Shown here: in pieces, positions 13,444 to 52,600 of the stretch | How positions within the stretch are numbered: position 1 is the first letter of the stretch | Layout: every line of letters begins with the position of its first letter | Program-made: the position numbers and the translations under genes | Assembly (NCBI RefSeq): GCF_028641065.1 | Contig: NC_073393.1 | Span: 1 to 64,000, forward strand | Length of the DNA stretch: 64,000 bases | Direction: 5' to 3' | Origin: Leucoraja erinacea | Lineage: Eukaryota | The notes under the pieces: generated by a model | Database searches by the model: none | What the model saw: the letters and a program-made list of their open reading frames with translations, nothing else | Told to the model about the DNA's origin: nothing

Positions 13444-13520
13444 CTTAAACTGACACAAACACCGGCAGTCTCTCTCTCTCTCTCTCACATCCACAGGCCG
13501 GGGTTCCGCCGTCTGCGCCA
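13444..13520 (-). promoter_or_regulatory. Candidate non-coding first exon / promoter of C19orf12
   Basis: CpG-containing patch ending in a donor-like AAG|GTACAG at 13444 on the - strand, upstream of the coding exon acceptor at 9300. Inferred, no transcript evidence. Confidence 0.45.
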
Positions 13521-13556
13521 AAGATCCTATAGCGGAGCTCTGCTATAGGATCTTTG
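13519..13556. mobile_element. P-superfamily-like fused-TIR footprint (19+19 nt)
   Basis: gtctgcgc-CAAAGATCCTATAGCGGAGCTCTGCTATAGGATCTTTG-gtctgcgc; perfect 8-bp TSD. Confidence 0.85.
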
Positions 13557-13581
13557 GTCTGCGCTCTCTGTACATACGCAC

Positions 13582-13603
13582 CAGAGATCCTATAAGATCT
13601 TTG
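13582..13603. mobile_element. Fused-TIR footprint, 22 bp
   Basis: atacgcac-CAGAGATCCTATAAGATCTTTG-atacacac; TSD 7/8. Confidence 0.75.
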
Positions 13604-13670
13604 ATACACACTATCCTCCTCCCCTTCCTTCTCTCTATCCCTCCCCTTCCCTCTCTCTCCCTCTCCCACC

Positions 13671-13687
13671 TAAAGATATGATCTTTG
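13671..13687. mobile_element. Degenerate fused-TIR footprint, 17 bp
   Basis: ctcccacc-TAAAGATATGATCTTTG-ctcgctcc; TSD 6/8. Confidence 0.5.
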
Positions 13688-13706
13688 CTCGCTCCGCACT
13701 CTCCAC

Positions 13707-13928
13707 CAAAGATCTTGTCAATTTTATTCTTGACAAGAAGTTTGAACTGGCAGATTTATGAATCTAACCCACACAACATTGATTACACTGCGAGTCGGGT
13801 CGGGTCAGGTAGGCTCAGGTTGCTAAAATGGGCGGGGAAAAATGCCCATGATCCCCTCCATAGCTACTACACGTCAGCCCATTGCATTTAGCAGGAGTAG
13901 CCTATCTTGCTCTGCTATAGGATCTTTG
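13707..13928. mobile_element. 222-bp non-autonomous DNA transposon (MITE) of the same family
   Basis: ctctccac-CAAAGATCTT...CTATCTTGCTCTGCTATAGGATCTTTG-ctctccac; perfect 8-bp TSD. Confidence 0.85.
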
Positions 13929-15426
13929 CTCTCCACTCTCTCTCTCTCCCCCACCACACACACACACTTGACACTAGCCACTGTAGAAGCGCCCTGCACT
14001 CTAGACTCACCCAGTCTCCAGCCTTGTGAGTACAATGACCTCCTGGTTCCCGCCCGGGCCCCAGTGAGCGACGACAAAGATCATGTGAATCAGAATCACG
14101 AGGCTAATCCCCAGAGATAATCTAGTTATTGTTCACAGCTCTGGTCTGGAAAATCACCCTGTCCCACGTTGTAGCCTGGAGTCACGTCAGCTGGACACGT
14201 CTCGACCAGAAACGTCACGCATTCATTCTCTCCAGAAATGCTGCCTGTCCCGCTGAGTTACTCCAGCATGTTGTGTTAATCGTCAGTGTAAACCAGCATC
14301 TGCAGTTCCTTGTATTCCCGTTATGCTTTTGATGGCTTGTCCTTAAATTGAGACTTTAATCTTAAAGGAGAGAGTTAAAGAGGTCAGGGAGAAAATTAAA
14401 CTGCCCGCGTCTGAAACTAAGTCAGAAGTACTGGAAGAACTCAGTCGGTCAGGCAGCATCGGTGGAAAGAGAAACCAGTCCATGTTTCTGGTCGGGTTGA
14501 GGTGAGACAACTTCGGCCCACAAAGTCCGTGCTGAACATGACGCCAAGTTAAACTAATCTCCTCTGCCTGCACGTGATCCATATCCCTCCATTCTCCACG
14601 TATCCATGTCCCTAGCCAAAAGCCTCTTAAACACCACTATCGTATCTGCCTCCACCACCACCCCTGACAGCACATTACCCCACACACGATGAGAGGCATA
14701 GATAGGGTAGACAGTCAGAACCTTTTTACCAGGATAGAAATGTCAAAGACCAGAGGGCACAGCTTTAAGGTGAGAGGGGCAAAGTTGAAAGGAGAGTTGC
14801 GGGGCAAGCATTTGACACAGAAGGTTGGGGGGTGCTCAAATATTGTCTTCCTGTTCGGGTTGGCTGATTAAGTGTGTTTTGTCCGTAGTCAGCAGATGTC
14901 TGAGACCGCAAGTCCACTTGAACGTACTGAGCCAGATCAGTTGTTACCGAACTGAACTCACTGTGGAATGAATGCATTAATGGGGCCACTCTGCTGCTGG
15001 ATCCGAAGTTGTCCGTGCCGCTGACGGTAAAGTCTGTGAAAGCAGCCCCATCAGAAACTGTGAGGCCTCGCATCCTCGGCGCTTCTGACACGCCGGCTCC
15101 GTCATGCTGGCTGTTTGGTTTGAGGCATCGTGACAGAGCCGGGCCGGGCATCAGCGGTACGGGAAAATGTCGGCGTTTTTCGAGCAGAGCACTTCAGACC
15201 CCGAGTACTGAGTTATGTTGGGTGGGCAGTAGGCGGTGACAAAATGAGTTAGTTGGGGATGGAAGATTTTATTAAAATATGTGTACATAAAATTGTCCAA
15301 ATGTTTTGAGGAGTGCATGAGTGAATGTAAAAGTGAATTAGCTAGCGAAATGGAAGAAATCACGGCGTTTCAGCGTGTGGTTTTGGCGGACCAAGGAATC
15401 AAAGGCCGAATCTGACATACACCCAC

Positions 15427-15462
15427 AAACACACGCACACACATACACACACACACACAGAG

Positions 15463-15502
<40 letters not shown>

Positions 15503-15503
15503 T
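15427..15503. repeat. (CA)n and (GATA)n microsatellites
   Basis: Direct inspection. Confidence 0.95.
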
Positions 15504-16606
15504 ATCCAGGTACACTCTGAGAAGAAAAAAAATGTTGAAATATTTATTTTGTCCAATTTCATTTGTTGCCATATTTATTTTGTTTGTGAGGTCAAAAATC
15601 CATCTGTTTGGACTTAAAATATTTTATCAAGACTAGATGTTACATTCCTTCTTAGAATTGTACTTCCTCTGCACAGTGAATGTGTGTTGGATAATGCTGT
15701 TAACATGTGCAGTGTCGTTCCACACAGCTGTTTGTAAAGGTCATTTGAGAATGTGATGATCCAGTTAGAATGTGATCTGTGCGACATCACCCACTGCCTT
15801 CACTGCAAATGTCCATGTGGGATTCATACAGAAGGTGATACACGCCTGTCTAATAGGCAGCGGAGGAGTATGTCACTCAGTTAGTCATTCCTTCTCTCCA
15901 GAAATGCTGCCTGTCCTGCAGTGTTACTCCAGCATTTTGTGTCTTTCTTCAGTGTAAACCAGCATCTGCGCTTTAGTTTACTTTTGTGTAAGAAGGAACT
16001 GCAGATGCCAGTTTAAACCGAAGATACACACAAAAAGCTGGTGACCCAGCGGGACAGGCAGCATCTCTGGAGAGAAGGAATGGGTGGCGTTTCGAGTTGA
16101 GACCCTACTTTAGTCTCGACTCAAAACGTCACCAATTCCTTCTGTTCAGGGATTCTGCCTGTCCCGCTGAGTTACCCCAGCTTTTAGTGTCTATTTTGGT
16201 TTGGTTTGGTTTAGTTTAGTTTAGAGATACAGTGCAGAAACAGGCCTTTCGGCCCACCGTGTCCGCACTGACCAGCGATCCCTGCACACTTGAATGGTAG
16301 GGAATGTCAGGAATGGTGGAGAAAGGAACTGGAGATGCTAGTTTAAACCAAAGATAGACACAAAAAGCTGGAGTAACTCAGTGGGACGGGCAGCATCTCT
16401 GGAGAGAAGGAATGGGTGACATTTCGGGTCGAGGCCCTTCTTCAGATTCTATAAGGAGAACGTCCCAACGCTATAAACATCCTCGTCCACGGATTTCCCC
16501 AATGTTCGTCACAATAAGAAATCAGTCTCTGTATATTTGGTTAAAAAAGAACTGCAGATGCTGGAAAAATCAAAGTTGGACAAAAATGCTGGAGAAACTG
16601 ATCAGT

Positions 16607-16634
16607 CTGAAGAAGGGTCTCAACCCGAAACGTC
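16607..16634 (+). ncRNA. Minimal type I hammerhead-like core in a Penelope-type repeat (representative copy)
   Basis: CTGAAGA-A-GGGTCTCAACCC-GAAAC-GTC; same motif at about 8413, 18522, 31048, 45826 (+) and about 16445, 19277, 44101 (-). Confidence 0.6.
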
Positions 16635-17495
16635 GCCTATTCCTTCTCCCCATAGATGCTGCCTCACCCGCTGAGTTTCTCCAGGATTTTTGTCTACCCT
16701 GCATATCTGGTTGGTCTTGTTTTTTTGCAGGGATCGGACGCTGCAACTGGAGAATTTATTCTGGCTGTTCAATGCCAGACTGCCCAAATTCTGTGTCTTT
16801 CCCCCTGCGATCCACGCACACTAACACTATCGTACACACAGGGATGATGTACAATTACAACAGCCAATTCACCTACAAACTTTCAAGAGGGAGCTCTTGA
16901 AAATAGCGGAGTCAGGGGATATGAGGAGAAGGCAGGAACGGGGTACTGATTGGGGATGATCAGCCATGATCACATTGAATGGCGGTGCTGGCATGAAGGG
17001 CCGAATGGCCTACTCCTGCACCTATTGTCATAAACCTGCATGTCTTTGGAATGTGGGAGGAAACCGGAGCACCCGGAGAAAACCCACGTGGGTCACGGGG
17101 AGAACGTACAAAATCCGTACAGACAGCACCCGTAGTCAGGATGGAACCCGGGTCTCTGGCGCTGTGAGGCAGCAATTCTACCGCTGTGCCACCGAGCCGC
17201 ACTAATATACCATGCTTTGTTCTGAATATTCAGTGTCATATTTATTTCAATAGTTTTTATTTATTTCAGAGTTCAAGTAAATCCCATTTTAGAATCAAAG
17301 GAAAATATACGAGTGATTTAAATCTTCATGCATTCAAGTCAAACTCATTGAAATTAATACAGACGATGAGAACACAGTGAAGGATGACTACTGATTGTGG
17401 CAACATTAAAATGAAGTTAGTTTAGTCGAGGTACAGGAGCAATCTCGATGTTGCTTCAACAAACTGCTGTCGGGCTGTCGGAGCAGATTTGTTTT

Positions 17496-17686
17496 TCATT
17501 TCCTCAGTTGGTGTATTTTGGACATGAATTTCTTTATTCGTTCAGTGTCCAGTTCATTGGCCCAATATCCTGCTTTCTTAAAATGTGAACCAATGATGAA
17601 GCCGTCTGCAGCCATGTACTGCTCCATGTTTTCATAGCTCACACCTGAGCCAACCAACACGGGAATCTTCAAAGCTTCTTTAACCT
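17496..17686 (-). CDS. BtpA-family exon 6 (last)
   Basis: EVKEALKIPVLVGSGVSYENMEQYMAADGFIIGSHFKKAGYWANELDTERIKKFMSKIHQLRK*. Confidence 0.93.
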
Positions 17687-32600: not shown

Positions 32601-35600
32601 CTGCACCAGGTGCAGCGAGATGGGGCTCCTAAGGGACCGTATTAGGATCCTGGAGCAGCAGCTCGATGACTTCGCTCTGATCAGGGAGAGTGAGGAGGTC
32701 ATAGAGGGGAGTTATAGAGAGGTGGTCACTCCAAAACCACGGGAGAGAGACATGTGGGTCACGTTAAGGAAGGGCAAGGGGCAGAGGCAGGAACGAGTGA
32801 GTACTCCAATGTCGGTACACCTCGCAAATAAGTACTCCTGTTTGAGTACGGATGGGGGTGACAGCCTACCCGGGGGTAGTGACAGCGGACGGGCCTCCAG
32901 CACAGAGACCGGCCCTGTTGCTCCAAAAGCTAGGGAAAAAAAGAGGGCAATAGTAATTGGGGACTCCCTCGCCCCAACCATTCTAGTTTAAATTGTTAGG
33001 GGGTCGGATAGGCGATTCTGTGGACGCAGTCGGGAGACCAGGATGGTGGTCTGCCTCCCTGGTGCCAAGGTCTCGGACGTGTCTCAACGCATCCAAGATA
33101 TCCTTAAATCAGAGGGAGAGGAGCCTGAGGTCGTGGTACATATAGGTACCAATGACATAGGAAAAAAAAGGGAAGAGGTCCTGAAGGGAGGATTTAGGGA
33201 GTTGGGAGGAGAGTTAAGAAAAAGGACCAAAAAGGTAACAATCTCAGGATTACTGCCTGTGCCACGTGACAGTGAGAGTAGGAATGGAGCGAGGTGGAGG
33301 ATAAATGCGTGGCTGAAAGACTGGTGCAGAGGGCAGGGATTCAAGTTCCTGGATCATTGGGACTTCTTTTGGGGAAGGTGGGACCTGTACAGAAAGGATG
33401 GGTTGCACTTGAACCCGAGGGGGACCAATATCCTAGCGGGGAAATTTGCAAAGGCAGCTGGGGAGACTTTAAACTAGAATGGTTGGGGCGAGGGACTCAA
33501 ATAGCGAAAGGTAGTAGACAGAATGGGAGGCAGGAAGCAGAAATGGGAAGCACTCGGACACAAGAGGAGAAAGAAAAAAAAGGAAATAAACAGAGAATAA
33601 GAGACGGGGGTTTTTTTAAATGTGCATATTTTAATGCTAGGAGCATTGTAAGAAAGGTGGATGAGCTTAGAGTCTGGATAGACACCTGGAAGTATGATGT
33701 TGTGGCGATCAGTGAAACGTGGTTGCAGGAGGGCTGTGATTGGAAACTAAATATTCCAGGATTTCGTTGCTTCAGGTGTGATAGAATTGGAGGGGCAAGA
33801 GGTGGAGGTGTTGCATTGCTAGTCAGGGAAGATATTACAGCAGTGCTTTGGCAGGATAGATTGGAGGGCTCATCTAGGGAGGCTATTTGGGTGGAATTGA
33901 GAAGTGGGAAAGGTGTAGCAACACTTATAGGGGTGTATTATAGACCGCCAAACGGGGAACGAGAATTGGAAGAGCAAATATGTAAGGAGATAGCAGAGAT
34001 TAGTAGTAAGCACAAGGTAGTGATTGTGGGAGATTTCAACTTTCCACACATAGACTGGGAAACACATTCTGTAAATGGGCTGGATGGGTTGGAGTTTGTA
34101 AAATGTGTGCAGGATAGTTTTTTGCAGCAATACATAGAGGTACCTACTAGAGGAGGGGCAGTGCTGGACCTCCTGTTAGGAAATGAGACTGGACAGGTGG
34201 CGGAGGTATGCGTTGGGGAGCACTTCGGGTCCAGTGATCACAATACCATTAGTTTCAATATAACTATGGAGAGGGTCAGAACTGGACCTAGGGTTGAGAT
34301 TTTTGATTGGAGAAAGGCTAACTTTGATGCGATGCGAGATGATTTAAAAGGAGTGAACTGGGACATTTTGTTTTATGGGAAAGATGTAGAAGAGAAATGG
34401 AGGACATTTAAAGGGGAAATTTTAAGAGTACAGAATCTTTATGTTCCTGTTCAGTTGAAAGGAAACAGTAAAAATTGGAAAGAGCCCTGGTTTTCAAGGG
34501 AAATTGGACATCTTGTTCGGAAAAAGAGGGAGATCTACAATAATTATAGGCAGCATGAAGTAAATGAGGTGCTTGAGGAGTATAAGGAATGTAAAAAGAA
34601 TCTTAAGAAAGAAATTAGAAAAGCTAAAAGAAGATATGAGGTTGCTTTGGCAAGTAAGGTGAAAGTCAATCCAAAGGGTTTCTACAGCTATATTAATAGC
34701 AAAAGGATAAGGAGGGATAAAATTGGTCCATTGGAGAGACAGAGTGGACAGCTATCTGCAGAGCCAAAAGAGATGGGGGAGATATTGAACATTTTTTTTT
34801 CTTCGGTATTCACCAAGGAGAAGGATATTGAATTATGTGAGTTAAGGGAAACCAGTAGAGTAGCTATGGATACTATGAGGTTCAAAGTAAAAGAAGTACT
34901 GACACTTTTGAAAAATATAAAAGTGGATAAGTCTCCAGGTCCTGACAGGATATTCCCTAGGACATTGAGGGAAGATAGTGTAGAAATAGCCGGGGCTATG
35001 ACAGAAATATTTCAAATGTCATTAGAAACGGGAATAGTCCCCGAGGATTGGCGTACTGCGCATGTTGTTCCATTGTTTAAAAAGGGTTCTAAGAGTAAAC
35101 CTAGCAATTATAGACCTGTTAGTTTGACTTCAGTGGTGGGCAAATTAATGGAAAAGATACTTAGAGACAATATATATAAGCATCTAGATAAACAGGGTCT
35201 GATTAGGAACAGTCAACATGGATTTGTGCCTGGAAGGTCATGTTTGACTAATCTTCTTGAATTTTTTGAAGAGGTTACTAGGGAAATTGACGAGGGTAAA
35301 GCAGTGGATGTTGTCTATATGGACTTTAGTAAGGCCTTTGACAAGGTTCCTCATGGAAGGTTGGTTAAGAAGGTTTAACTGTTGGGTATAAATGCAGGAA
35401 TAGCAAGATGGATTCAACAGTGGCTGAATGGGAGAAGCCAGAGGGTAATGGTGGATGGCTGTTTATCGGGTTGGAGGCAGGTGACTAGTGGGGTGCCTCA
35501 GGGATCTGTGTTGGGTCCTTTGTTGTTTGTCATGTACATCAATGATCTGGATGAAGGTGTGGTAAATTGGATTAGTAAGTATGCAGATGATACCAAGATA

Positions 35601-37165
35601 GGGGGTGTTGTGGATAATGAAGAGGATTTCCAAAGTCTACAGAGTGATTTAGGCCATTTTGAAAAATGGGCTGAAAGATGGCAGATGGAGTTTAATGCTG
35701 ATAAATGTGAGGTACTACACCTTGGCAGGACAAATCAAAATAGGACGTACATGGTAAATGGTAGGGAATTGAAGAATACAGTTGAACAGAGGGATCTGGG
35801 TATAACCGTGCATAGTTCCTTGAAGGTGGAATCTCATATAGATAGGGTGGTAAAGAAAGCTTTTGGTATGCTAGCCTTGATAAATCAGAGCATTGAGTAT
35901 AGAAGCTGGGATGTAATGTTAAAATTGTACAAGGCATTGGTGAGACCAAATCTGGAGTATGGTGTACAATTTTGGTCGCCAAATTATAGGAAGGATGTCA
36001 ACAAAATAGAGAGAGTACAGAGGAGATTTACTAGAATGTTGCCTGGGTTTCAACAACTAAGTTACAGAGATAGGTTGAATAAGTTAGGTCTTTATTCTCT
36101 GGAGCGCAGAAGGTTAAGGGGGGACCTGATAGAGGTCTTTAAAATGATGAGAGGGATAGACAGAGTTGATGTGGACAAGCTTTTCCCTTTGAGAATAGGG
36201 AAGATTCAAACAAGAGGACATGACTTCAGAATTAAGGGACAGACGTTTAGGGGTAATATGAGGGGGAACTTCTTTACGCAGAGAGTGGTGGCGGTGTGGA
36301 ATGAGCTCCCAGTGGAAGTGGTGGAGGCAGGTTCATTGGTATCATTTAAAAATAAATTGGATAGGCATATGGATGAGAAGGGAATGGAGGGTTATGGTAC
36401 GAGTGCAGGCAGGTGGGACTAAGGGGAAAAAAATTTGTTCGGCATGGACTTGTAGGGCCGAGATGGCCTGTTTCCGTGCTGTAATTGTTATATGGTTATA
36501 TGATCATATTGAATGGCGGTGCAGGCTCGAAGGGCCGAATGGCCTACTCCTGCACCCATTTTCCATGTTCCACCGTTGAGGTCTTGGTTGCCACCATACA
36601 CTGAGATATTCTACCACCCCACCTTCCTGCACTGATATAATCTGTCACCCCACTGTGTATTGACACCTTCTGCCACCAACCGCTGTACTGACACATTCTG
36701 TCACCCCTCGCCCTACTCTGAGGGTCACCCATTCCTTCTCTCCACAGCTGCTGCCTGTCCCGCTGAGTCACTCCAGCATTTTGTGTCGATCTTTGTGATA
36801 TAATCTGTCACCCCCCCCCCCCCATGGCAGCCCCGCTACTCACGATGCCGGCCTCCATGTACACGGCTGCCTCCTCGCACGCCTTCTCCACTATCTGGGG
36901 CACAGAAAGGCTGTGCCGCGGTGCCCCTGGGGGGGAGAGGAGAGGGTGAGGGTGAGGGTGAGGGTTAGGGTGAGGGTGTGAGGGTGAGGGTGAGGGTGAG
37001 GGTGAGGATGAGGGTGAGGGGGAGGGGGAGTGTGAGGGGGGGGGGGGGGGGAGGCGGCGCTGGAGCGCGGGGGGGGGGTCCGGGCCTCACCTGGCAGCGC
37101 CCGCAGGTGCACCACCATCCCAGCACGGCGCAGCGCACCGAAGCCCACAACCGCTGTAGCCGCAT
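17496..37165 (-). CDS. BtpA/SgcQ-family TIM-barrel protein (C. elegans F13E9.13-like), about 269 aa; exons 37165-37091, 36926-36844, 25820-25640, 24122-23972, 19519-19392, 17686-17496; apparent 1-bp frameshift in exon 1
   Basis: Family motifs across exons with GT-AG boundaries and matching phases: (G)MVVHLRALPG, EEAAVYMEAGIDGLIVENMHDIPY, LPLGVQML, DFIRAEGFVF, LLRYRKQIGA..IFADIKKKHSSH, AEFFLADGVIVTGIATG, IPVLVGSGVS..N, ADGFIIGSHFKKAGYWANELD. Confidence 0.92.
19392..19519 (-). CDS. BtpA-family exon 5
   Basis: SSHALTADVSIAETGRAAEFFLADGVIVTGIATGQETDPAQLK; TTTCCAG acceptor, GTACGT donor. Confidence 0.92.
20140..23400 (-). mobile_element. Near full-length Rex1/Babar-clade LINE (APE + RT) with frameshifts
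   Basis: LPTILLANVQSLENK, CFTETW, CRPFYLPREF, SDH; GAPQGCVLSPLLYSLYTHDC, KFADDTT; DPHHPGH..LPSGRRYRS; (CTTGAA)n tail near 20140. Confidence 0.93.
23972..24122 (-). CDS. BtpA-family exon 4
   Basis: DADFIRAEGFVFSQISDEGFLDACASDLLRYRKQIGAENIQIFADIKKKH; AG/GT flanks. Confidence 0.93.
25150..25410. repeat. Four tandem copies of a 60-70 bp unit from the fold-back repeat family
   Basis: GCTGGAGTAACTCAGCGGGTCAGGCAGCATCTGTGGAGAACATGGATAGGTGACGTTTCA repeated. Confidence 0.9.
25640..25820 (-). CDS. BtpA-family exon 3
   Basis: DGLIVENMHDIPYSPRVGPEVTAIMAAICVAVRQSYPSLPLGVQMLSAANQQAMAVALAT; AG/GT flanks. Confidence 0.93.
25990..26740 (+). repeat. GC-rich interspersed repeat family; other copies at about 15-610, 10740-11130(-), 28000-28725, 30170-30815, 55560-57140(-)
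   Basis: Shared blocks CGGGAGCTC, GGCTTTAACATCG and CCTTCCATCACAGTGAG..TCACTGTGATGGATG, then simple-repeat tails. Confidence 0.8.
28890..30160 (-). mobile_element. Two tandem Rex1/Babar 3' fragments
   Basis: QRLHFLRKL..FYRGTVESVLTYCI..W; DPYHPSH..LPSGKRYRSI; each with its own tail. Confidence 0.85.
31476..32030 (+). mobile_element. Older CR1 3' fragment that hosts the young CR1; its tail resumes at about 36500-36565
   Basis: ...GGATGATCACTCATGAT | ATGATCATATTGAATGGCGG... split around the young CR1. Confidence 0.8.
32030..36500 (+). mobile_element. Near full-length young CR1 LINE in intron 2 of the BtpA-family gene. ORF1 (Zn finger, coiled coil, SGNH esterase) about 32520-33477; ORF2 (APE + RT) about 33294-36422 with one premature stop at 35376-35378
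   Basis: ORF1 motifs IVIGDS, HIGTND, DGLHLN; ORF2 motifs YFNARS, ISETWL, GDFN, SDH, YRPVSLTS, QHGF, GVPQGSVLGP, KYADD; (TTATATGG)n tail. Confidence 0.95.
36844..36926 (-). CDS. BtpA-family exon 2
   Basis: CCCCAG|GG GCA CCG..= GAPRHSLSVPQIVEKACEEAAVYMEAGI|GTGAGT. Confidence 0.9.
36943..37020. repeat. (AGGGTG)n hexamer repeat in BtpA-family intron 1
   Basis: Direct inspection. Confidence 0.9.
37091..37165 (-). CDS. BtpA-family exon 1 (needs one extra base in CTG-GG-ATG to stay in frame)
   Basis: ATG CGG CTA CAG..GTG CTG GG/ATG GTG GTG CAC CTG CGG GCG CTG CCA G|GTGAGG. Confidence 0.75.
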
Positions 37166-37207
37166 AGCGACGGCCCCCCCGGCCCCGACCCCGGCCTGGG
37201 CCACAAC

Positions 37208-37241
37208 CAAAGATACCAGAGGAGCTCCTCTATGATCTTTG
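37208..37241. mobile_element. Fused-TIR footprint (17+17 nt) just upstream of the BtpA-family ATG
   Basis: gccacaac-CAAAGATACCAGAGGAG/CTCCTCTATGATCTTTG-gccacaac; perfect 8-bp TSD. Confidence 0.82.
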
Positions 37242-37249
37242 GCCACAAC

Positions 37250-37540
37250 AAGCCCGAGCGACCGTGGGGCGGGACTTGTCGATGGGGGCGGGGGGTGGGG
37301 CTTGTCGATGGGGGTGGGGCTTGTCGATGGGGGTGGGGCTTGTCGATGGGGGGGGCGGGGCTTTGTCGATGGGGGTGGGGCTTGTCGATGGGGGCGGGGC
37401 TTGTCGATGGGGGCGTCGATGGGGGCGGGGCTTGTCGATGGGGGCGGGGCCTGCCGCGCTCGTCTCCCGCCACGGATTTAAAGAGGCCGGCGCAGGCGCG
37501 CTGCGGAGAGAGTGTTGGCGGCTGCGGGTGAGCGCGGGAA
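37250..37540. promoter_or_regulatory. Bidirectional CpG-island promoter of CCNE1 and the BtpA-family gene, with GC boxes, E2F sites and CCNE1 non-coding exon 1 (donor at 37528)
   Basis: GGGGCGGGGC repeats 37270-37450; E2F-type TCTCCCGCCA 37463-37472 and GCGCGGGAA 37532-37540; TTTAAA at about 37477; GCGG|GTGAGC donor. Confidence 0.75.
37266..37451. repeat. Minisatellite (GGGGYGGGGCTTGTCGATG)n, about 9 units
   Basis: Direct tandem repeats in the bidirectional promoter. Confidence 0.93.
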
Positions 37541-38269
37541 TGAGAGACCAAATGATGGAGGGAAGAGGAAGAGGAGGAAGAGGAAGAGGAGGAGTAGGAG
37601 GGCTGTGAGGGGCCGAATGGCAGCTGACAGGGCAGAGGAGGGTAGCGGGACAAGGGATGATGAGGGTTATAGGATGACTGGCGGTGTGAGTTAGGAGAGG
37701 AATGAGGGGCTAAATGGTTGTGCGGAGGGAGAGGGGGATGAATGGCGGTGGTATGGGATAGCAGCTGAAGAGGGGCTGAATGGCTGCAGAGGGGGAGATG
37801 GACGGATGGTGGCATCGTGGTGGGGAACTGAATGGTGGTGGTGAGGAACTGGATGGTGGTGGTGGATGATAGGGGTGGGATGAGAGGCTGAATGGTTGTG
37901 GAGAAAGGAAAAACCAAATGGTGGCGGAGAAGAGTGGGGGATGTGAAGGCTTGATGAGGAAAAACCTTTTCACCCAGAGTTGTGAATCTGCCACAGAAGA
38001 CAGTGGAGACCAATTCATTGGATGTTTTCAAGAGAGAGTTTAGCTCTTGCAGCTAAAGGAATCAAGGGCTATGGGGAGCAAGCAGGAATGGGGTACTGAT
38101 TTTAGATGATCAGCCATGATATATTGAATGGCGGTTCTGGCTTGAAGGGCAGAATGGCCTACTCCAGCACCTACTTTCTATGTTTCAATGTCAGTGAGGG
38201 GATTTGACTGGCTCTCACCCTGTCCCTCTCACTCACAGGACGCCTTTCACCCACACAGCTGCTTGGAGG

Positions 38270-41200
38270 ATGCCCAGGAAAAGGTGTGTGAATGCCCATG
38301 TAACCGTGCCCCAGCCTGTGCTGTGAATTGCCATGGGTTTAAAGCCTTTTATTTTCAATTCAACTTTCAGTGCAAGAACAGAAGAACATTCAACAAAGCC
38401 AGCCAAACCTGACGAGGTACTGCGACCCAGAAAGCGAAAGATATCCGCTGCAATTGTGAGTTTACCTGCACACCAGTGTGACATAGCCCAGTAGTGTGTG
38501 ACATAAAACTCTGACTTTGGTAATCTGTATCCTTTGATCGTAGTGTGTGCAAGATTTGGATAAAATTACTGAAGAATGGGCAGTGAAACCATTTGAAGAT
38601 AAGGTATGCCATGTTTGATATCGAAATGCCAATTTCTGAAGAAGGGCTCTGACCTGAAACATCACCTACTTTTTTTTTCAGAAATGCTGCCTGATCTGCT
38701 GTGTTGCACCAGCATTTTGTGTCTATCCTACTAATTTCTCTAGCTGCAAATACTGAACAATCTGCTCCTATAAAGGCAGGACACTGTCCTTTCACCATTT
38801 TGCATAAACTGGATTTTATTGTGGCATTTAATTTTATTTTGCCTGTATGCATCAGCCTAGATCTTCTGGGACCTTGAGGGTTAAGTTCTTATAGTTGCCC
38901 AACTTGCTGAGTTTCTCCAACATTATTTTTGCTCAAAATCCCAGCATCTGCAGTTCCTAATCTTGGATCTATTTGGGTTTCTAATCTAGGAACAATGGTT
39001 AGGAACTGGAGATGAAGACTTTGAGCATTGTTCCTAATCTAATTAATAGAAATTAATGAAGCTAAATTTCCTAGGCAATTCATTCCTTTCCTACAATCCT
39101 GAATTATTATTTCCTATTTGCATCGCCTATTCCTTCTCTCCATAGATGCTGCTACACCCGCTGAGTTTCTCCAGCATTTTATTTCTACCTTCAGGATAAT
39201 TATTGTTCACTGTTGCAGGCTTTCACATGTTCCACATTCCCAACACTTGCGTAGCCTCATCATGGAATGACATGGATAGTTTAGACAGCAATGTGCCTTC
39301 CCCAAATGTCATCAGTTCACATAGCAGTTGCTCGAATAGCAATCACCGGTTTCATTGTCCCTTCTATTGTCCCCTCCTGTTGGCTCTTTGATTAAATTTA
39401 GAATACTTCAGAGATTCTTCAGCTGGTTGAAATGGAACTCTCATCAGATGTTTGCGTGGCTTCTGAGTAACGTAATCACGTTTTAGCTTGCAGGCAATCG
39501 GGAGCATTTTGTCACTACAATGGTTGAAATGACTGTCAGCACTTCACCGGTCAGAGTTGAGACTTTCTTAAGGCAGTTATAAAATCAATAATACTGCTAA
39601 AGACAGACAAAAAAAGCTGGAGTAACTCAACGGGACAGGCAGCTTCTCTGGAGGGAAGGAATGGGTGACGTGTTGGGTCGAGACCCTGCTTCAGATTCGA
39701 CCCGAAACGTCACCCATTCCGTCTCTCCAGAGATGCTGCCTGTCCAGCTGAGTTACTCCAGCTTTTTGTGTCTACCTTCGGTTGAAACCAGCATCTGCAG
39801 TTCCTTCTTACACAATAATACTGCTGTACCATTTCACCCCTGTGACAGTGAAAGGTGATGTTTTGGGGGACACGGCAAAGCAGGATCTTGACTTTTCCAT
39901 CATAAAATGGATTTGTGCCTACTACCAGGAAAAAAAACCGATGTGTATGCAAAAACAAAGAATTTCACTGTACCGTCATGGCACATGTGACAATAAAGTA
40001 TCTATATTTTGCATTTGCAAAATTGACTTTAATTGCAGGATTGTTGGAAAATTAACACCAACTGCGTGAGTCCATACAGATTCATTTCATCGCGGAAAAA
40101 TCCAGATGGCAACATTACAGCGTACTCGACAAGTAATTGCAAATTCAAAAGTGTATTGGTCACCCCAGCTAGAGCTTCACCATTACCAGCCTTGTGGTGA
40201 GTTTATTTACGTGCACTGTACAATTGTACATATTCCAAGTTATCTATTATCCATGTTACCAGATAATACATTATCATTGTATTTTTGAAATATAAACAGC
40301 TGGGCCAATGGAGATGATGTATGGAATGTTCTTCTGAAAAAGGAACAGATGTATCTGAGGGACAAAGATTTTTTCCAAAAACACCCACTCTTGCAACCAA
40401 AGATGAGGACAATTCTTTTGGACTGGCTAATGGAGGTAAGGGCTCCCTCCACGTGGAGAATTTGTTATCATGGTTTGATTTTCATTTCAACAAACACGTG
40501 AATCTGTCTTGGGAAAGGTGTTTTCAGTCAAATTCTAAAGCCATTGTTGTGTTATTTGTGGATGTTGGCAAAGCTCATTGCTTGTTTCTAGTTGTCCTTT
40601 AACCTGTTCAGTGCCACCCCTGAGTATACTCTAGTCATGGCCAATAGTGGGGGGGAAAACATGGCATGTAAACAGGTTAAAGTTGGGTCAGCAAGCAGTT
40701 GCTCTAGTCCTTGTTGGAACATTAGAGTTTTGATCTACGTGAATAAAGTCCATGTTAGGATGGTTGTGTGAATTGTAAATAGTTTTTTTTTTTTTTTTTT
40801 TTTTTATTAGAAGTTAATACAGCACAAAACAGTACAGTGGAACCTAATTTTAGGTGCCAACTATGTAATACCGTAATCCATTCTATGTACAACCTCTAGT
40901 TTTATGTTATGAGAAGGAAGTAAGCAAGACAAGAAAAAGAAAACAATAGAAAGAGGAAAAAGTGGAAAAATAGATGGTAGAGAGTAGAAAAACGTGAAGT
41001 GTGTATATAAAAAATAAAAAAGGAAGAGAGAAAGTGGAAAGTAGAAATAGAAGAGAAGGCCCCTTAAAAGAGAATTTTTCAAATCTGTATTCGGAGATGT
41101 AGATCTATCCGCGTCATGAACTGAAATCAGCAATCTTTACGGTACCGCTGCATCACATGATTCCAAAAAGTCGATGAAAGGAGACCAACTCCTTAAGAAT

Positions 41201-44200
41201 TGGTCATATTTATCTATTAGTCGGAGTCTCATTTCTTCAAGGCGTGCTATGTCCATCATATTCCTAATCCGCATTTTAATAGTTGGTATGGTTGTATTTT
41301 TCCAAAATTTAAGTATCAATTTCTTTCCAATTATTAACCCATAATTTAAAAAAAACATTTTGATCTTTATTTAAATTGGTATCTTCTCCTATTATTCCAA
41401 ATATAATCCATTCCGTTTTGGGTTCTATTCTTGACTTGAAAAGCTTTGTAAATATATCAAATATATCACTCCAAAATTTATTCAACTTTGTACATCCTAC
41501 AAATGAATGTGTTATATTAGCGTTTTGAAACAAACATTTATCGCATCTGGGAGAGACGTTTGGATAAAATTTATTCAACCTCGTTTTTGAATAATATAGT
41601 CTATGTAATAATTTGAATTGAATTAAATTATGTCTTGCATTAATAGAACAGTTATGTGTATTCATCAAATACTTTTCCCATCTATCCTTCGGGATCTTTA
41701 TCATTAGCTCATGTTCCCAATCTTCCCTTAATGCTTCTGTTGAGGGTGATTCTCTATTTAATATATTATTATAAAAGTATGATATTAATTTTTGTGAATC
41801 AGCCTTAATATTCATTGCTTCTTCTAAAGGATCTAAAAATATAGTTTGAAATCTATGTGTATATTTCTTCATAAAGTCACATACCTGTATATATTTAAAA
41901 TATTGATTATCCTTCAATTTAAATTTTTATTTTAATTGTTGAAATGATAACAGTTTGCCCACTTCATACATATCCCCTACTTTCCTAATCCCCAGTCTAT
42001 CCCATTGTTGATATGTGTTGTCGATGAAAGAAGGTTTGAATGCGGGGTTGTTCAATAGTGGGGTTAGTACTGATAAATTATTTAATTTCAAGGATACTTT
42101 TATTTGTTTCCAAATTCTTATTATATTGTGAATAATTGGGTTCTTCTTATATATTATACTATTCAATTTTATCGGTGAGAGCAGGATCGTTCCTATATCG
42201 TGCGGATAGCACTCCTCTTTCTCCATTCTTATCCACTCCAACTGCTGAGTGGAACTATCCAGCCAGTACATTATGTTCTTAATATGCACTGCCCAGTAGT
42301 AATACATAAAGTTAGGTAATGATAAACCCCCAACTTCTTTAGATTTGCACAAATGCTTTCGTTGAATTCTATGTGTTCTGTAGTCCCATATAAAATTAGT
42401 GATAGTGGAATCTAGTTTTTTGAAAAAATATTTTGGAATATATATTGGGATCGCTTGAAACAAATATATTAATTGTGGTAAGAAAGTCATTTTTATAGCG
42501 TTAATTCTACCTATCAATGAGAGCGGAAGCGTTTTCCAAAATTTAATCGTATCATTCAGTTTATTTAATAGTGGTATAAAATTGGCACTAAATAATGATT
42601 TGCGTCTTCTCGTAATTTGAATACCCAGATACTTGAATTTTTCTGTTGCAATTTTGAAGGGGAATTTTAGTAAGTGTCTCGAATCCTGTGGTTTTAAAGG
42701 ATGGTTGTGTGAATAATTCAAGAATGATAGTTACAATATAAAAGTAGACTTGAGTCCTCCAAGCAGGAGGTGAGAAATTTGGGAAAGGCTAAATATTGGA
42801 AAAATAAGTTGTCATCCAGCTGTCTGTGGAGAGTTGATAACCCACTGAAAACCGGAAAGAGTGAATGGTATAATTGTCCAGAGAGAAGAGCCAAGAGTGT
42901 TTTATTGTCATGTGTCCCAGATAGAACAATGGAATTCTTGCTTGCTGCAGCACAACAGAATATGTAAACATAGTACATCACGGGAGAAAAAAAGTCTAGT
43001 GTGTGTGTATATCCACGCACCCATACTCAATAAATATAGTGCAATAATAATAATAGTCTGTTGTATTTCAGAGCTTTTTTTGATGTTGTGTTTAATAGCC
43101 TGATGGCTGTAGGAAAAAAGCTGGTCCTGAACCTGGACATTACAGTTTTCAGGCTCCGTTCTTCCCAATGGCAACGGTGAAATGAGTGTGTGGCCAGGAT
43201 GGTGTGGTCTTTGATGATGTTGGCAGCCTTTTTGAGGCAGCGACTTCGATATATCCCTTCGATGGTGGGGAGGTCATGGCCTGGGCAGTGGTCACAACTT
43301 TTTGCAGTCTTTTCCGCTCCTGGACGTTCAAGTTTCCGAAACAGGCCACGATGCAACCAGTCAGTATGCTCTCCACTGTATGCTCTCCACATACTGAGAG
43401 GGGAATTGTACACGGCCTTTCATTATTGGTTTGCAGGAATGCTTTTACAAATTTAAGAAATAACTAGAAGCAGTTGTAATGGAAACATGTTAACTTCGAT
43501 TTTTTTTTTTTAAACTATTGGAAAGGTTTGTGATGTCTACAAGCTACAAAGAGAGACGTTTTATTTAGCACAAGACTACTTCGATAGGTTTATGGCAACA
43601 CAGAACAACGTTGTGAAGACCCGATTACAGCTTATTGGAATCTCAACTTTATTTATTGCTGCAAAGCTGGAGGTACGGAAACATTTACAAGCAAGTGAAG
43701 TATAGTATCTATTTCCAAGTAACAACAGAACACTTCATTCTACCACTTTTGCAGGAAATCTACCCACCCAAGTTGCACCAGTTTGCATCTGTAACTGACG
43801 GGGCTTGCACCGAAGAAGAAATTCTTGACATGGAACTTGTTATTTTGAAGGTAAAATTAAAAGTATTATAAAATTAAAGTATTTCAAATAATGACTAATA
43901 TACAAATTGGCTGAAGAAATAGAATACACGGTTTTGTATCACCTTGAATGGAAAGACATTAAAAATTATCTCTGTTCAAGAAGGAACTGCAGATGCTGGA
44001 AAATCGAAGGTAGACAAAAGTGCTGGAGAAACTCAGCGGGTGCGGTAGCAGCTATGGTGTGAAGGAAATAGGTGATGTTTCGGGTCTCGACCCTTCTTCA
44101 GACTGATGTCGGGGGGGGGGGGTCTCGACCCGAAACGTTGCCTTTTCCTTCGCTCCATAGATGCTGCCTCACCCGCTGAGTTTCTCCAGCATTTTTGCCT

Positions 44201-47324: not shown

Positions 47325-47330
47325 AATAAA
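47325..47330 (+). terminator. Probable CCNE1 polyadenylation signal
   Basis: AATAAA about 355 nt after the stop, followed by a T-rich tract. Confidence 0.55.
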
Positions 47331-48575: not shown

Positions 48576-48579
48576 ATCA

Positions 48580-48823
48580 ATATGAGGGGGAACTTCTTTA
48601 CGCAGAGAGTGGTGGCGGTGTGGAATGAGCTCCCAGTGGAAGTGGTGGAGGCAGGTTCATTGGTATCATTTAAAAATAAATTGGATAGGCATATGGATGA
48701 GAAGGGAATGGAGGGTTATAGTACGAGTGCAGGCAGGTGGGACTAAGGGGAAAAAAATTTGTTCGGCACGGACTTGTAGGGCCGAGATGGCCTGTTTCCG
48801 TGCTGTAATTGTTATATGGTTAT
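48580..48823 (+). mobile_element. CR1 3' end nearly identical to that of the 32030-36500 element
   Basis: Near-identical to about 36257-36500. Confidence 0.9.
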
Positions 48824-48842
48824 GCCGAACTGTTGCCCCTCA

Positions 48843-49262
48843 GACCACGTGCCCCCCCCCCCCCCCCCTCACTGGGACCACGTGCCCCCCCCCCCCCCAC
48901 CACGTGCCCCCCCCCACCCCCACTGGGACCACGTGCCCCCCCCACTGGGACCACGTGCCCCCCTCCACAGCACGCACTTCCCACCACGTGCCCCCCCCCC
49001 CACTGGGACCACGTGCCCCCCCCCCCCCACTGGGACCACGTGCCCCCCTCCACAGCACGCACTTCCCACCACGTGGCCCCCCCCCCCCCACTGGGACCAC
49101 GTGGCCCCCCCCCCCCCCCCCTGGGACCACGTGCCCCCCCCCCCCACGTGCCCCTGGGACCACGTGCCCCCCCCCCCCCCCCCCCACTGGGACCACGTGC
49201 TGGGACCACGTGCCCCCCCCCCCCCCACTGGGACCACGTGCCCCCCCAATTGTGACCACGTG
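48843..49262. repeat. Minisatellite (CACTGGGACCACGTGCCCCC)n directly upstream of URI1
   Basis: Tandem units each containing CACGTG. Confidence 0.95.
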
Positions 49263-49320
49263 CGGCAGTAGACAGTGCGCATGCGGGCGCGGGGCAAGAT
49301 GGCGGTGGTAGTGAGGTGCT
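49261..49320 (+). promoter_or_regulatory. URI1 core promoter with NRF1 and YY1 motifs
   Basis: TGCGCATGCG at 49276-49285 and CAAGATGGCGG at 49295-49305, at the start of a CpG island. Confidence 0.7.
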
Positions 49321-49562
49321 GAGGGCGGGCGGGAGAGAGAGTGAGAGTGAGAGAGACGGAGAGAGGGGGAGCCGGCAGGAGGACGATGCGAGTGTGAGAT
49401 GTCCGCCGTTGCTGCTGCCGTTGCTGCTGCTGCCGCCGGGGAGGAGTCGCGGATGAGAAGCGCCGCCGCCGTTGTTGCCGTCGTGTGTGCGAGGAGAGCG
49501 CGGCTCCGCGGCCACACGCACAAACACTTCTATAGGACTGCCTGTTGTTGAGGCCGCGGGAC

Positions 49563-49646
49563 ATGGCCGCTCCGCCGCCGCCGCCCACACCAGCACCTGC
49601 ACCCGGCCCACACGCCCGCTCCCGGCTCCGGGCCGAGCACGCCAAG
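49563..49646 (+). CDS. URI1: URI1 coding exon 1
   Basis: GACATGG Kozak context; AAG|GTAAAG donor. Confidence 0.85.
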
Positions 49647-52600
49647 GTAAAGGGCCTCGGGCCGCAGCAACGCTGCCTGCCCCGGCCCCGGCTCTCCCGC
49701 TGCGGCTGCCAATGTGAATGTTCCCCTGAGCTGTTGAAGGGAAGGCGCTGGAGGTTGTACACAAGTTAGAAACATAGACCATAGGTGCAAGGGGAGACCA
49801 CTCGGCCCTCACCAATGGCTGATCATCCACAATCACTACCCGTTCCCGCCTTCTCCCCATATCCCTTGACTCCGTTAGCCCTAAGAACTAAATCGAACTC
49901 TCTCTTAAACATCCCCCCCCACCCCCACCAAAGCAGCTACAACGTGTGGTGGGATCCGCTGGCAGCTGGCTGTAAACACAAGCACCCACACCACAGCCGT
50001 CAACACACACACACACACAGTGAAGCAAATAACCTCTAGCGAGCTATAGGATCTTTGCACTGAAGGGTCTCGACCCGAACCGTCCACCCATTCCTTCTGT
50101 CCAGAGATGCTGCCTGTCCCCCTCAGTTACTCCAGTATTCAATGTCTACCGTAGATTTTAAACTAGCATCTGCAGTTCTTTCCCACACACACACACCTTC
50201 ATACTTTCACTTTAAACCGTTCTTCTACTTAGTTAGAAATGTTCGATCAATGTTTTCTTTTTTAAAGAAAAACGTCCATGTTATAATTTACATTCCCCCT
50301 CGCCCCCGCCCCCTTTTTAAACAACACTGAAACGTGATATAACTCAATCGCAGCTGTAAACAGTCGGCACCAACACCACTGCACTTCAATACTGCACATT
50401 TCTTCAATTTCAAAAATCGAGTGTTTTTATATCCATGTGTCCCCAAACGGAACAAATGAGAATCTTACTTGCAGCAGCACAACAAACATTAACATAGAAA
50501 CATAGAAATTAGGTGCAGGAGTAGGCCATTCGGCCCTTCGAGCCTGCACCGCCATTCAATATGATCATGGCTGATCATATTGAATTACTTAGTAAAACTC
50601 ACAGTAAACAAAAATCAGTATATATAAATGGACAATAGTAGTGATTGTAGGTGTCATCCTATTTCCGTCTTGCTTTCTGGATTGCGTACAATCATAAGTA
50701 AATCGGAGATTCCCATTGTTAGCAAATGGAAATAATTTTATGTTATGCTTGCTTCTGGTCGTGTAGTTGAGTCGTTTTAATGAAGATCATGATTTCTGTT
50801 TTATATATTAGTGACTTTTGCGTAGGTATCAGACGTTTCTTCAATACTTGGTTTTCTCCAGCTCACTTAGCAAATGTTTTCTTATCCCGTATTGTTTGAA
50901 GCCAATGCTGAGTGTTTTTATTGAGGCCCGTTCGTCATGGCTGTTGTGTGGAGGTTCTTGCTGCCAGTTAGACAGAGCAGCGCCTTCTGCTGGGCGTCTG
51001 GGATCTGTGACTCATCAGAACGACTAACTGTCTCCACTGAACCTATCAGATTAAAGTCAGTGCAGGACTGAACCAGGAAATGTCCAGTTCATAAGAGTCA
51101 AATGGGGACAGCTCCTTCGGCCCACCTAGTCCATGCTGGCCAAGTGCCCATGTAAACCAGTTCAATTTGCTTATGTTTAAGAAGGAACTGCAGATGCTGG
51201 AACAATCGAAGGTAGATAAAATTGGTGGAGAAACCCAGCAGATGAGGCAGCATCTATGGAGGGAAAGAATGGGTGATGTTTCGAGTTGAAAAACGTCACC
51301 CATTTCTTCGCTCCATAGATGCTGCCTCACCTGCTGACTTTCTCCAGCATTTTTGTCTACTTTCCATTTGCTTAGGTTCGCAACGGAATCAAGGGACATG
51401 GGGAGAAAGCAGGTACAGGGTGCTGATAGGGATGATCAGCCTTGATCATATTTAATGGCTCAAAGGGCCGAATGGCCTACTCCTGCACCTATTTTCTATG
51501 TTTGACCCATATCTCTAAGCTTTCCGATCCATGTGGAGTTGGATATGGAAAAGAAGGATTGTACTTTAATGATGAAGATATAGTGACCTATACAATTTTT
51601 ATTCTGGCTACTGGTGCCCAGTAACAATTATGTAATTAAGTAAGCTAACCAGAAATATTTGTAAATAATTACCATGTTTGAAATCAACACTGATTTTTTA
51701 AAAGGGTGATGCAATGGTACAATGAAACTTTGTATTTCTGTAACGTTTTTAAATCTCCATTTAGGTCTAATTTATTGCTATACATTTTTTAAGTAAGGGG
51801 ATTTAGTATTGAGCCCTTTGTAGGGCCACCCACGACAGTCATCCACCACATACCCATCACAAAATACCCATCAGTTGGTGCTTCTGACACTGACTCATTT
51901 TAGATCCAATGTGCCACTCTCTTTTAGATCCCACTCTATCTGACCAGTCTGCCTTGCGAAACCTTGGCAAAAAGCCCTTGCTGAAACCTGTGTTAACTAC
52001 ATCAAACACCCCATCCTCCTTATTACCGCCTCGAATAAATTCAAACACTTTATTAAGCACTTACTACAAGGTAGATACAAAATGCTGGAGTAACTCAGCG
52101 AGTCAGGCAGCATCTCTGGAGCGAAGATTTAAACCAGCATCTGCAGTTCTTTCTTACACAGTCAGGTACTGCATTCCCATTAGTAAATCTGTGCTAACTG
52201 TCCTTGATTAATCTGTGCCTTTTAAAATATGTTAATGCTGACCCTTAGCGTGACAATAAACTGAAACTGAATGGATTATATTTGTACACCATCAAAGTTA
52301 AATAAGTCGGCTTGTTGAGTGCCAGGAGAGAGCGTGGAGAAAGGCTAAGGAGATTTGGAGAAATTACTGATATGTTTCGAAGCCCTGATATGTTGATGCA
52401 CCAAAGATGATGTGATAACAGAAATACTTGTCGCTTATTGTTAAAACAATTCTGTGATTTTGTTCATTTGAACTTTAATTTTAGATCATGCATTGTATAT
52501 TCATAACTTGCCATTTTTCTGGATGGAAGCAAATGAATCGCAATTAATCTGCATAAATGAAGTTGTTTCACTCTGTCAATTATGTTCCTAGGTGGTTGTA

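Follow-up and report, generated by a model that had tools for sequence, protein, structure and literature searches.

Five short inserts in the window, the 64,000-nt stretch of Leucoraja erinacea DNA analysed here, are probably excision footprints of a transposase with a long staggered cut. They can be read as scars that a cut-and-paste DNA transposon left at its donor sites, its ends presumably having been cut with a stagger of about 19–20 nt, a reading to which we give a little better than an even chance. The five inserts, together with a sixth, non-coding one, have matching ends and are flanked by target-site duplications (TSDs) of 8 bp, as the initial annotation had proposed and as direct reading and a combined motif and TSD scan bore out. 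The duplications are present at all six inserts and are perfect at three (Table 1). The consensus of the terminal inverted repeat (TIR) of the transposon family is CAAAGATCCTATAGC[G/A]GAGC.

Table 1. Inserts of the transposon family and coding features in the window.
Feature	Position	Position with TSDs	Strand	TSD or domain match
38-bp TIR-TIR palindrome	13519-13556	13511-13564	+	TSD GTCTGCGC, 8/8
22-bp remnant	13582-13603	13574-13611	+	TSD 7/8
17-bp remnant	13671-13687	13663-13695	+	TSD 6/8
222-bp non-coding element	13707-13928	13699-13936	+	TSD CTCTCCAC, 8/8
34-bp palindrome	37208-37241	37200-37249	+	TSD GCCACAAC, 8/8
32-bp remnant	50026-50057	50018-50065	+	TSD 7/8
C19orf12 coding exon in ORF	8989-9330		-	Pfam PF20721, E 3.3e-12
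Cyclin E-like gene, three ORFs with Cyclin_N	40289-43868		+	Pfam

The five short inserts are made up of TIR sequence only, in keeping with their earlier description as joined element ends, although the division of the 32-bp insert into 16 + 16 nt did not survive alignment of its arms to the TIR. The arms of this insert measure about 19/20 and 15 nt, with the left arm running to about TIR position 20 (with 4 edits), the right arm to position 15, and a 2-nt GC overlap between them. Both arms of the 38-bp palindrome extend to TIR position 19/20, and a blunt 19 + 19 join and a 20 + 20 join minus a GC overlap fit equally well. Both arms of the 34-bp palindrome belong to a TIR sub-variant that is 2 nt shorter, and the centre of this palindrome, GAGCTC, is shared with the 38-bp insert. 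In the 22-bp remnant, the arms are at most 13–14 nt long, and the junction lies inside a self-complementary TATA stretch of the TIR. The 17-bp remnant, with arms of about 7 + 10 nt, is the most decayed and the least certain of the six. The 222-bp element carries a complete TIR and high-copy interior sequence at its right end; at its left end, the TIR match covers just 8–9 nt and is followed by a fold-back (element positions 1–15 against 24–38).

That the inserts are chance palindromes or local duplications of low-complexity, GC-rich DNA is very improbable, even with the CT- and C-rich repeats that make up the hotspot DNA around the four leftmost inserts. Strict end-motif pairs with a TSD of at least 6/8 were found 5 times in the window, against a mean of 0.105 in shuffled sequences, and a looser end motif gave 7 pairs, against a mean of 0.11 (200 Markov shuffles, with a maximum of 1 pair for both versions of the motif). 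The seven pairs comprised the six inserts and 16349-16539, the latter with a TSD of 6/8 and within a SINE-like repeat, which was dropped as a chance pair. The end motif CAAAGATC occurs 13 times, compared with 3.06 expected (at least 13 in none of 100 shuffles), and 8 of the 13 occurrences fall within the inserts. A search for a TSD-flanked partner end at the stray copies of CAAAGATC or ATCTTTG (positions 8145, 14075, 29996, 36795, and 63721) found none, and these five are taken as chance occurrences, because 5 were observed against 3.06 expected. A motif-free scan for palindromes with TSDs recovered the 38-bp and 34-bp inserts alone, and nothing in each of 10 shuffles. Besides the excess of 5–7 pairs over the roughly 0.1 seen in shuffles, one and the same 20-nt end at three distant loci and on an unrelated contig argues against chance, as does the interior of the 222-bp insert, which is a high-copy repeat. 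A chance origin was refuted for the 38-, 222-, 34-, and 32-bp inserts, and is conceivable for the 17-bp insert alone, whose length and 6/8 TSD make it weak evidence of another origin.

No arm extends past TIR position 20. Of the 12 arms of six footprints (the five in the window and one on an unrelated, animal-like metagenome contig, L001), 6 stop at TIR position 19/20 and 2 at position 15, while the other 4 do not go beyond position 14, in what is a small sample of 5 scars from one window and 1 from elsewhere. The arms reach 19–20 nt, and not the 16–17 nt that the initial annotation had put forward on the model of the Drosophila P element. Arm positions 17–20 represent true element sequence, because the 222-bp copy has matching nucleotides at its right end. 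Position 16 is a G in the left arms (38-bp, 32-bp, and L001 footprints) and an A in the right ends (38-bp and 222-bp inserts), and the arms therefore derive from two distinct element ends. The junctions of the short inserts fall on microhomologies of 2–4 nt, with an ambiguity of 2 nt (GC) in the 38-bp, 32-bp, and L001 footprints and a wider one in the 22-bp remnant. The footprint lengths vary (17, 22, 32, 33, 34, and 38 bp), which argues for independent repair and against copies of one unit. The arms of the 34-bp palindrome, 2 nt shorter but with the same end sequence, require either a cut whose position is set by the sequence or the trimming of a 2-nt flap.

From these features, we infer a staggered cut, a possible link to the P superfamily, and an order of events in which an element would have been inserted at each site and later excised. 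The transposase would cut the transferred strand at the tip of the element and the other strand about 19–20 nt inside the end, and a 3′ tail derived from the TIR would therefore remain on each flank. In end-joining repair by the host, the two tails could then anneal through very short self-complementary stretches (GC, TATA), the flaps would be trimmed, and the break would be sealed; the predicted product has two arms of up to 20 nt each between its TSDs. The 222-bp insert would represent a small non-autonomous copy, or else incomplete repair synthesis from the right end. To our knowledge, a long stagger is documented for the P superfamily only (17 nt, in the Drosophila P element).

The layout of the scars closely follows that of Drosophila P-element footprints, in which two stretches of up to 17 nt each lie between the TSDs and are joined through microhomologies in the tails; the 8-bp TSD and the TSD-TIR-TIR-TSD order are likewise common to both (PMC2895639, available in part). 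The P element is cleaved with a 17-nt stagger and prefers promoters and local hotspots for insertion (available part of PMC7776569), the latter being a possible further likeness, and the skate TSDs are GC-rich in a manner similar to the P target motif, GTCCGGAC, with a tendency towards T2, A7, and C8. The differences are that the arms measure 19–20 nt here rather than 17 nt, that the host is a vertebrate, and that the skate scars are fixed genomic fossils, whereas the P scars are laboratory products. The proposal in the initial annotation that these are P-type footprints is partly supported: it held for the layout, since TIR-only remnants between TSDs match P end joining as the available excerpts describe it, but not for the arm length or for kinship of the TIRs, itself a weak and not strictly defining feature: only the initial CA is shared with the ends of Drosophila P and zebrafish Pdre2. 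The Pdre2/THAP9 system resembles the skate family in being a vertebrate cut-and-paste system with TSDs of 8 bp, short TIRs, and copies that carry internal deletions, and differs in its 13-bp TIR of another sequence, as far as the excerpts at hand describe it. In cell assays, zebrafish THAP9 produced larger flanking deletions and not neat TIR remnants (PMC10983969, available in part). A Pfam search of 10 ORFs, chosen from the 44 in the window that are 110 aa or longer, gave LINE RT/endonuclease domains only, with no DNA-transposon transposase and no THAP/GTP-binding transposase among them, and a term search of the available part of PMC10824691 for THAP9 of cartilaginous fish found nothing. Because no DNA transposase was found among these 10 ORFs or elsewhere, the P/THAP9 label stays a suggestion drawn from the shape of the scars.

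Standard annotation criteria (YARNG termini plus an 8-bp TSD) would label the family hAT. All three termini, CAAAG, CAGAG, and TAAAG, conform to YARNG, the hAT signature as defined in the available part of PMC3014272, and the hAT elements (hobo, Ac, Hermes, Tol2, and Charlie) share these termini, the 8-bp TSD, and short TIRs with the skate family, non-autonomous hAT copies being common in vertebrates. T2 and A7 also occur in the hobo target motif, GTNCGNAC. The TSD pattern (T2, A7, C8) fits the P and hobo target motifs equally, and was rejected as a discriminator between P and hAT, because the published motifs are nearly identical. The excision products are different. When hAT, Transib, and MULE elements excise, the flanking DNA forms a hairpin and no TIR remnant is therefore expected, and the whole element is removed in hAT (PMC5499845, available in part), whereas 13–20 nt of each TIR are kept here and five of five short inserts are TIR sequence instead of TIR-free scars.

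Flush excision, by a hAT or another transposase, could nevertheless have given rise to the scars if refilling templated by the sister stopped within about 20 nt and the ends were then joined, which would make the inserts internal-deletion derivatives. This origin is unlikely, though it has some support: P-element gaps in flies are most often repaired by incomplete synthesis followed by end joining (available part of PMC2895639), the YARNG termini favour hAT (PMC3014272, in its available part), and the 222-bp insert, with its left end of 8–9 nt, a filler that folds back, and some 200 nt belonging to the right end, fits one-sided synthesis. Aborted synthesis, however, would be expected to yield arms of widely differing length, yet 6 of the 12 arms stop at 19/20, and no arm is intermediate between 20 nt and the 222-bp insert. 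If it did produce the scars, they would be uninformative on cut geometry.

It is also possible, but distinctly improbable, that the 34–38-bp palindromes are mobile two-TIR units copied or moved in trans by a transposase, with the shorter inserts as their decayed forms. Their common centre despite unequal arms is reminiscent of subfamilies, the bin over the 38-bp insert is strongly repeated in four runs, and short TIR-only MITEs are known, for example Made1, which is likewise a small palindromic unit of two TIRs in the excerpts available. Made1 is of the mariner type, whereas the inserts here range between 17 and 38 bp, as end joining would explain. A separate TSD flanks every copy, as in MITEs, yet the lengths in the window (17, 22, 32, 34, and 38 bp), the asymmetric arms, and the microhomology junctions resemble repair products. 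Made1 is much longer than these inserts, and we know of no eukaryotic mobile element below about 80 bp. Furthermore, a 19–20-nt stagger at both ends would be expected to split a 38-bp unit into unpaired single strands, and, given the stiffness of DNA, a 38-bp duplex is probably far too short for its ends to be paired in a transpososome. Slightly more doubtful still is the fuller proposal that the palindromes are the smallest eukaryotic transposable units, generating 8-bp TSDs on insertion, with a preference for CpG-rich gene starts and with 17 + 17 and 19 + 19 subfamilies.

The transposon family is highly repeated in runs of four organisms (X3, X15, X16, and X19). Summed contig depth in X3, which is not a copy number, was 6.0e5–1.2e6 over 13768-13931 and 7.5e4 over the 38-bp insert, compared with 20–160 in unique bins, and the other three runs showed a similar pattern. 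The 20-nt end had a single match in metagenome contigs, which is the further footprint on L001, and scans of genome contigs and of viral contigs gave 0 matches in each. The same scars were present in contigs of two other organisms (X16 over 13529-13776 and X3 over 13585-13703); a search of the run contigs for empty or full alleles found none, as each contig either has the scars too or fails to extend across the sites. A 60-aa frame of the 222-bp insert gave no candidate in a protein database, and an Rfam search of 13300-14200 gave no match near the gathering score. Matching of literature text with the 14-nt end and its complement returned one unrelated match only, and no report of TIR-retaining footprints in vertebrate genomes was found in a limited literature collection.

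If the inserts are true footprints of a long-stagger transposase, they constitute a natural genomic record of donor-DNA cutting by a vertebrate transposase, a record that is likely large, judging by read depth. They would imply cuts offset by about 20 nt, a geometry otherwise documented for the Drosophila P element alone, and would make a long stagger among vertebrate P/THAP9-like enzymes testable by genome analysis, while the spectrum of microhomologies could reveal the ways in which such breaks are repaired by end joining in the germ line. If the partner were instead a hAT transposase, the scars would contradict canonical hAT excision, the more surprising outcome. The identical 20-nt end in a cartilaginous fish and in the unrelated animal of contig L001 could also reflect horizontal transfer of a long-stagger family, though this bold reading is improbable.

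The initial annotation placed the inserts at gene 5′ ends, and this gene context is partly confirmed, whereas promoter targeting is a proposal based on three loci in one window. The C19orf12 and cyclin E-like exons were verified, and the 34-bp and 32-bp inserts lie in CpG-island-like DNA, but the C/CT-rich hotspot of the first four inserts, 4.2–4.6 kb upstream of the C19orf12 exon on the minus strand, has a CpG o/e of just 0.30, and a C19orf12 promoter there is putative. Two stretches which we take to be URI1-like (63086-63295 and 49536-49766) had no Pfam match, nor did the putative BtpA ORF at 37087-38031 on the minus strand. Targeting of CpG-rich gene starts by the family would become testable from genomes if the footprints are true; the scars bring small palindromes and 8-bp duplications into promoters, and would thus be a source of cis-regulatory variation. 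All three loci fall within the GC-rich 18% of the window: the 34-bp palindrome lies about 3.1 kb upstream of the cyclin E-like Cyclin_N exons, within a CpG-island-like stretch (36901-37900), and the 32-bp remnant is located at the edge of another (49101-50100).

Direct reading of three places in the window, a cluster of four inserts (fp1, fp2, fp3 and the longer el4; the hotspot) and the separate inserts fp5 and fp6, revealed six inserts that start with a CAAAGAT-like motif, end with ATCTTTG and carry 8-bp direct repeats (target duplications, TSDs) on either side, as the initial annotation had described. A pairing script combining these end motifs with a TSD of at least 6/8 returned five pairs in the window with the strict motif and seven with a looser one, far above the means of 0.105 and 0.11 pairs, respectively (maximum 1), in 200 Markov shuffles. 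The seven comprised the six inserts and 16349-16539, which lies inside a SINE-like repeat with a TSD of only 6/8 and was set aside. The 8-mer CAAAGATC occurred 13 times against 3.06 expected, a count reached in 0/100 shuffles, and eight of these 13 occurrences lie within the inserts; a partner end with a TSD was looked for at the other five, and none was found. The 14-mer of the terminal inverted repeat (TIR), allowing up to 3 mismatches, gave 14 matches, compared to 7.27 expected (3/100 shuffles get to 14), with 10 in the inserts. A motif-free scan for palindromes of 16-60 bp flanked by a TSD of 7/8 or better returned fp1 and fp5 only, and 0 in each of 10 control shuffles. The six-insert observation is real, and chance is an extremely improbable explanation for it; fp3 is weak when taken alone, the sole weak one among the six.

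Inserts and Pfam-supported gene matches in the window
Feature	Coordinates	Length	TSD	Strand
fp1	13519-13556	38 bp	8/8	
fp2	13582-13603	22 bp	7/8	
fp3	13671-13687	17 bp	6/8	
el4	13707-13928	222 bp	8/8	
fp5	37208-37241	34 bp	8/8	
fp6	50026-50057	32 bp	7/8	
Cyclin_N matches (Pfam)	40289-43868			+
C19orf12 match (Pfam)	8989-9330			-

Every arm of the short inserts (one TIR remnant each) was aligned to a reference end, the right end of el4 read inward (CAAAGATCCTATAGCAGAGC, then AAGATAGG...). Both arms of fp1 extend to TIR position 19/20 with 1 edit in total; the point where they meet can be shifted over 2 nt, which allows both a 20+20 reading with a GC overlap and a blunt 19+19 one. The insert fp5 shares the central junction of fp1, and each of its arms is a TIR sub-variant that lacks 2 nt (7 edits). 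The arms of fp2 reach at most 13-14 nt and meet inside a self-complementary TATA stretch, and those of fp3 are about 7 + 10 nt. The proposal that the five short inserts consist only of joined ends stood, in that the aligned arms are all TIR, but needed correction for fp6, which is not 16+16: its left arm runs to about TIR position 20 and its right arm to 15, with the 2-nt overlap of fp1. Among the 12 arm ends of these five inserts and a further footprint on the metagenome contig L001, half (six) fall at position 19/20, two others at 15 and the remaining four at 14 or below, and position 20 is exceeded by none (0/12). At positions 17-20 the arm letters belong to the element itself and are not filler. 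Position 16 is G in the left arms of fp1, fp6 and L001 and A in the right ends of fp1 and el4, so the two arms derive from two slightly different ends of the parent element.

The scar layout (TSD, two TIR remnants, TSD) is like that of the Drosophila P element. The staggered cut of unusual length (17 nt) made by P transposase, and the preference of P insertion for the surroundings of promoters, both cited in the initial annotation, are stated in excerpts of PMC7776569 and PMC10983969. According to passages of PMC2895639, P excision leaves a 17-nt non-complementary 3′ tail on each flank; in the end-joined product, two remnants of up to 17 nt each, with or without filler between them, are enclosed by the TSDs, joining often occurs at microhomologies within the tails, and repair by incomplete synthesis and subsequent end joining is common. 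Drosophila P tails are 17 nt, whereas the arms here are limited to 19-20 nt. In the simplest account, each flank would keep a 3′ tail of about 20 nt after excision. In fp1 the terminal GCs of the two tails would pair with each other; in fp6 and L001 the terminal GC of one tail would pair with the GC that the other tail has at positions 14-15, and a 5-nt flap would be removed; the fp2 tails would pair at TATA, and fp5, because its sub-variant lacks 2 nt, would lose a 2-nt flap. That the 20+15 junction recurs in two organisms is consistent with the same microhomology having been used repeatedly.

The upper limit on arm length argues against gap repair aborted after a flush cut, which we consider unlikely, and the variable, asymmetric junctions, together with the geometry, disfavour mobile micro-palindromes, a less probable reading still. 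Excision by hAT, Transib and the MULE Muta1 forms a hairpin on the flanking DNA, as described in part of PMC5499845, so their scars should hold no TIR; the same part bears out the premise that hAT normally removes the whole element. We therefore hold with moderate confidence that the excising system works like P. Whether it is a P element, rather than hAT or another family, is about evenly balanced. Points in favour of P are the shape of the scars, their 8-bp TSDs and their GC-rich context at 5′ ends. The termini (CAAAG, CAGAG, TAAAG) match YARNG, which with an 8-bp TSD is given as the hAT signature in a portion of PMC3014272, and the TIR is unlike both the Drosophila P tail and the zebrafish Pdre2 TIR; each of these points is against P or neutral. 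The TSDs, with T at position 2 in 4/6, A at position 7 in 4/6 and C at position 8 in 5/6, fit the P target motif (GTCCGGAC) and the hobo target motif (GTNCGNAC) alike. No transposase was found among 10 window ORFs scanned against Pfam, nor was an autonomous copy. The footprint sample is small (five in the window plus L001), and a literature search of limited reach, with Repbase and Dfam outside it, found no description of TIR-retaining footprints as vertebrate genomic fossils.

Parts of the hotspot region were present in sequencing runs of five coded organisms; of the 24 listed runs, four were compared, each from a different organism (B, C, D or E). The fp1 bin is strongly repeated, with a summed depth of 7.5e4 (X3), 4.3e4 (X16), 7.2e4 (X19) and 579 (X15, in which unique bins gave 0-16), values used qualitatively only, since depth sums are not copy numbers. 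An X16 contig covers 13529-13776 with 1 differing letter, and an X3 contig covers 13585-13703 with 2 mismatched and 6 gapped letters; because these contigs span fp2 and fp3, both scars are shared. Neither an empty nor a full allele was seen among contigs of the four runs.

The left end of el4 agrees with the TIR over 8-9 nt only, and its first 15 nt recur inverted at element positions 24-38. A further copy of el4 beyond its last 20 nt was sought in the window and none was found; the element has no notable ORF, and an Rfam search gave nothing near threshold. Contigs of the four runs aligned to 13440-14640 revealed that its interior and right end are extremely repeated, with a summed X3 depth (again qualitative) of 6.0e5-1.2e6 over 13768-13931 versus 20-160 in adjoining unique bins. 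The bin with the left end reached 3.3e4, 10-30 times lower than the interior and right end, indicating that the right part is common family sequence and the left end atypical. At loose contig ends (13774/13776), other copies have about 12 more letters. Either el4 may be a non-autonomous copy of small size, or it may have arisen by one-sided repair synthesis and end joining with fold-back filler.

When JGI metagenome contigs were scanned for exact copies of the 20-nt end, a single locus emerged, L001 2962-2994; the bacterial/archaeal and viral contig collections gave 0 matches. This 33-bp insert has a left arm of 20 nt, a right arm of 15 nt and the 2-nt overlap of fp6, and shows no clear TSD. 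Given its AT-rich sequence and an apparent Ig-domain exon, judged by eye, the contig probably comes from an animal different from the window's. Two other palindromes lie on L001, one near-perfect and about 100 bp long (770-880), the other made of 15+15 nt around a 3-nt centre (1570-1620), neither related to this TIR; both could be TIR-TIR scars that other families left in that animal. A scan of L001 palindromes up to 60 bp, a size range that excludes the 100-bp one, gave no TSD of at least 5/8.

The placement of the inserts at gene 5′ ends (C19orf12, CCNE1/BtpA, URI1), as initially annotated, held in part: fp5 and fp6 lie within CpG-island-like stretches, whereas the hotspot, 4.2-4.6 kb upstream of the C19orf12 exon, is in a stretch rich in GC yet poor in CpG (o/e 0.30) that consists of C- and CT-rich repeats. 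The segments 63086-63295 and 49536-49766, which gave no Pfam match, are putatively URI1. Blocks with GC of at least 0.55 make up 11,400/64,000 bases of the window; five of the six inserts lie inside such blocks, and el4 begins 7 nt past the end of one. By our own arithmetic on this one window, three independent loci would all be GC-rich by chance at about 0.178 cubed, or 0.006, which is suggestive.

The hotspot is set in CT-rich (other strand GA-rich) tracts (13470-13487, 13616-13668 and 13929-13952), a possible parallel to P insertions in fly heat-shock promoters, with which a published study reportedly dealt. Two of the three footprint loci each have a long C-rich minisatellite array immediately upstream (12529-13357 and 48830-49281; families D1, D6-D8); both arrays have units of about 20-22 nt and a common core, CACTGGGACC, and they may mark the same kind of chromatin. 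Only 27 nt past fp5, inside the CpG-island-like stretch that precedes the cyclin E exons, lies a tandem array (37268-37477) in which a G-rich unit of 19 nt (GGGGCTTGTCGATGGGGGC-like; family D12) is present in at least 9 copies. The window holds 144 consecutive N at 5351-5494. A 245-nt segment at 36255-36499 recurs at 48579-48823 with 99% identity, and a related copy is found at 5671-5915 (D10); the first copy comes after LINE RT ORFs at 33294-36422, and the segment is a young LINE 3′ end beside both CpG-island-like stretches.
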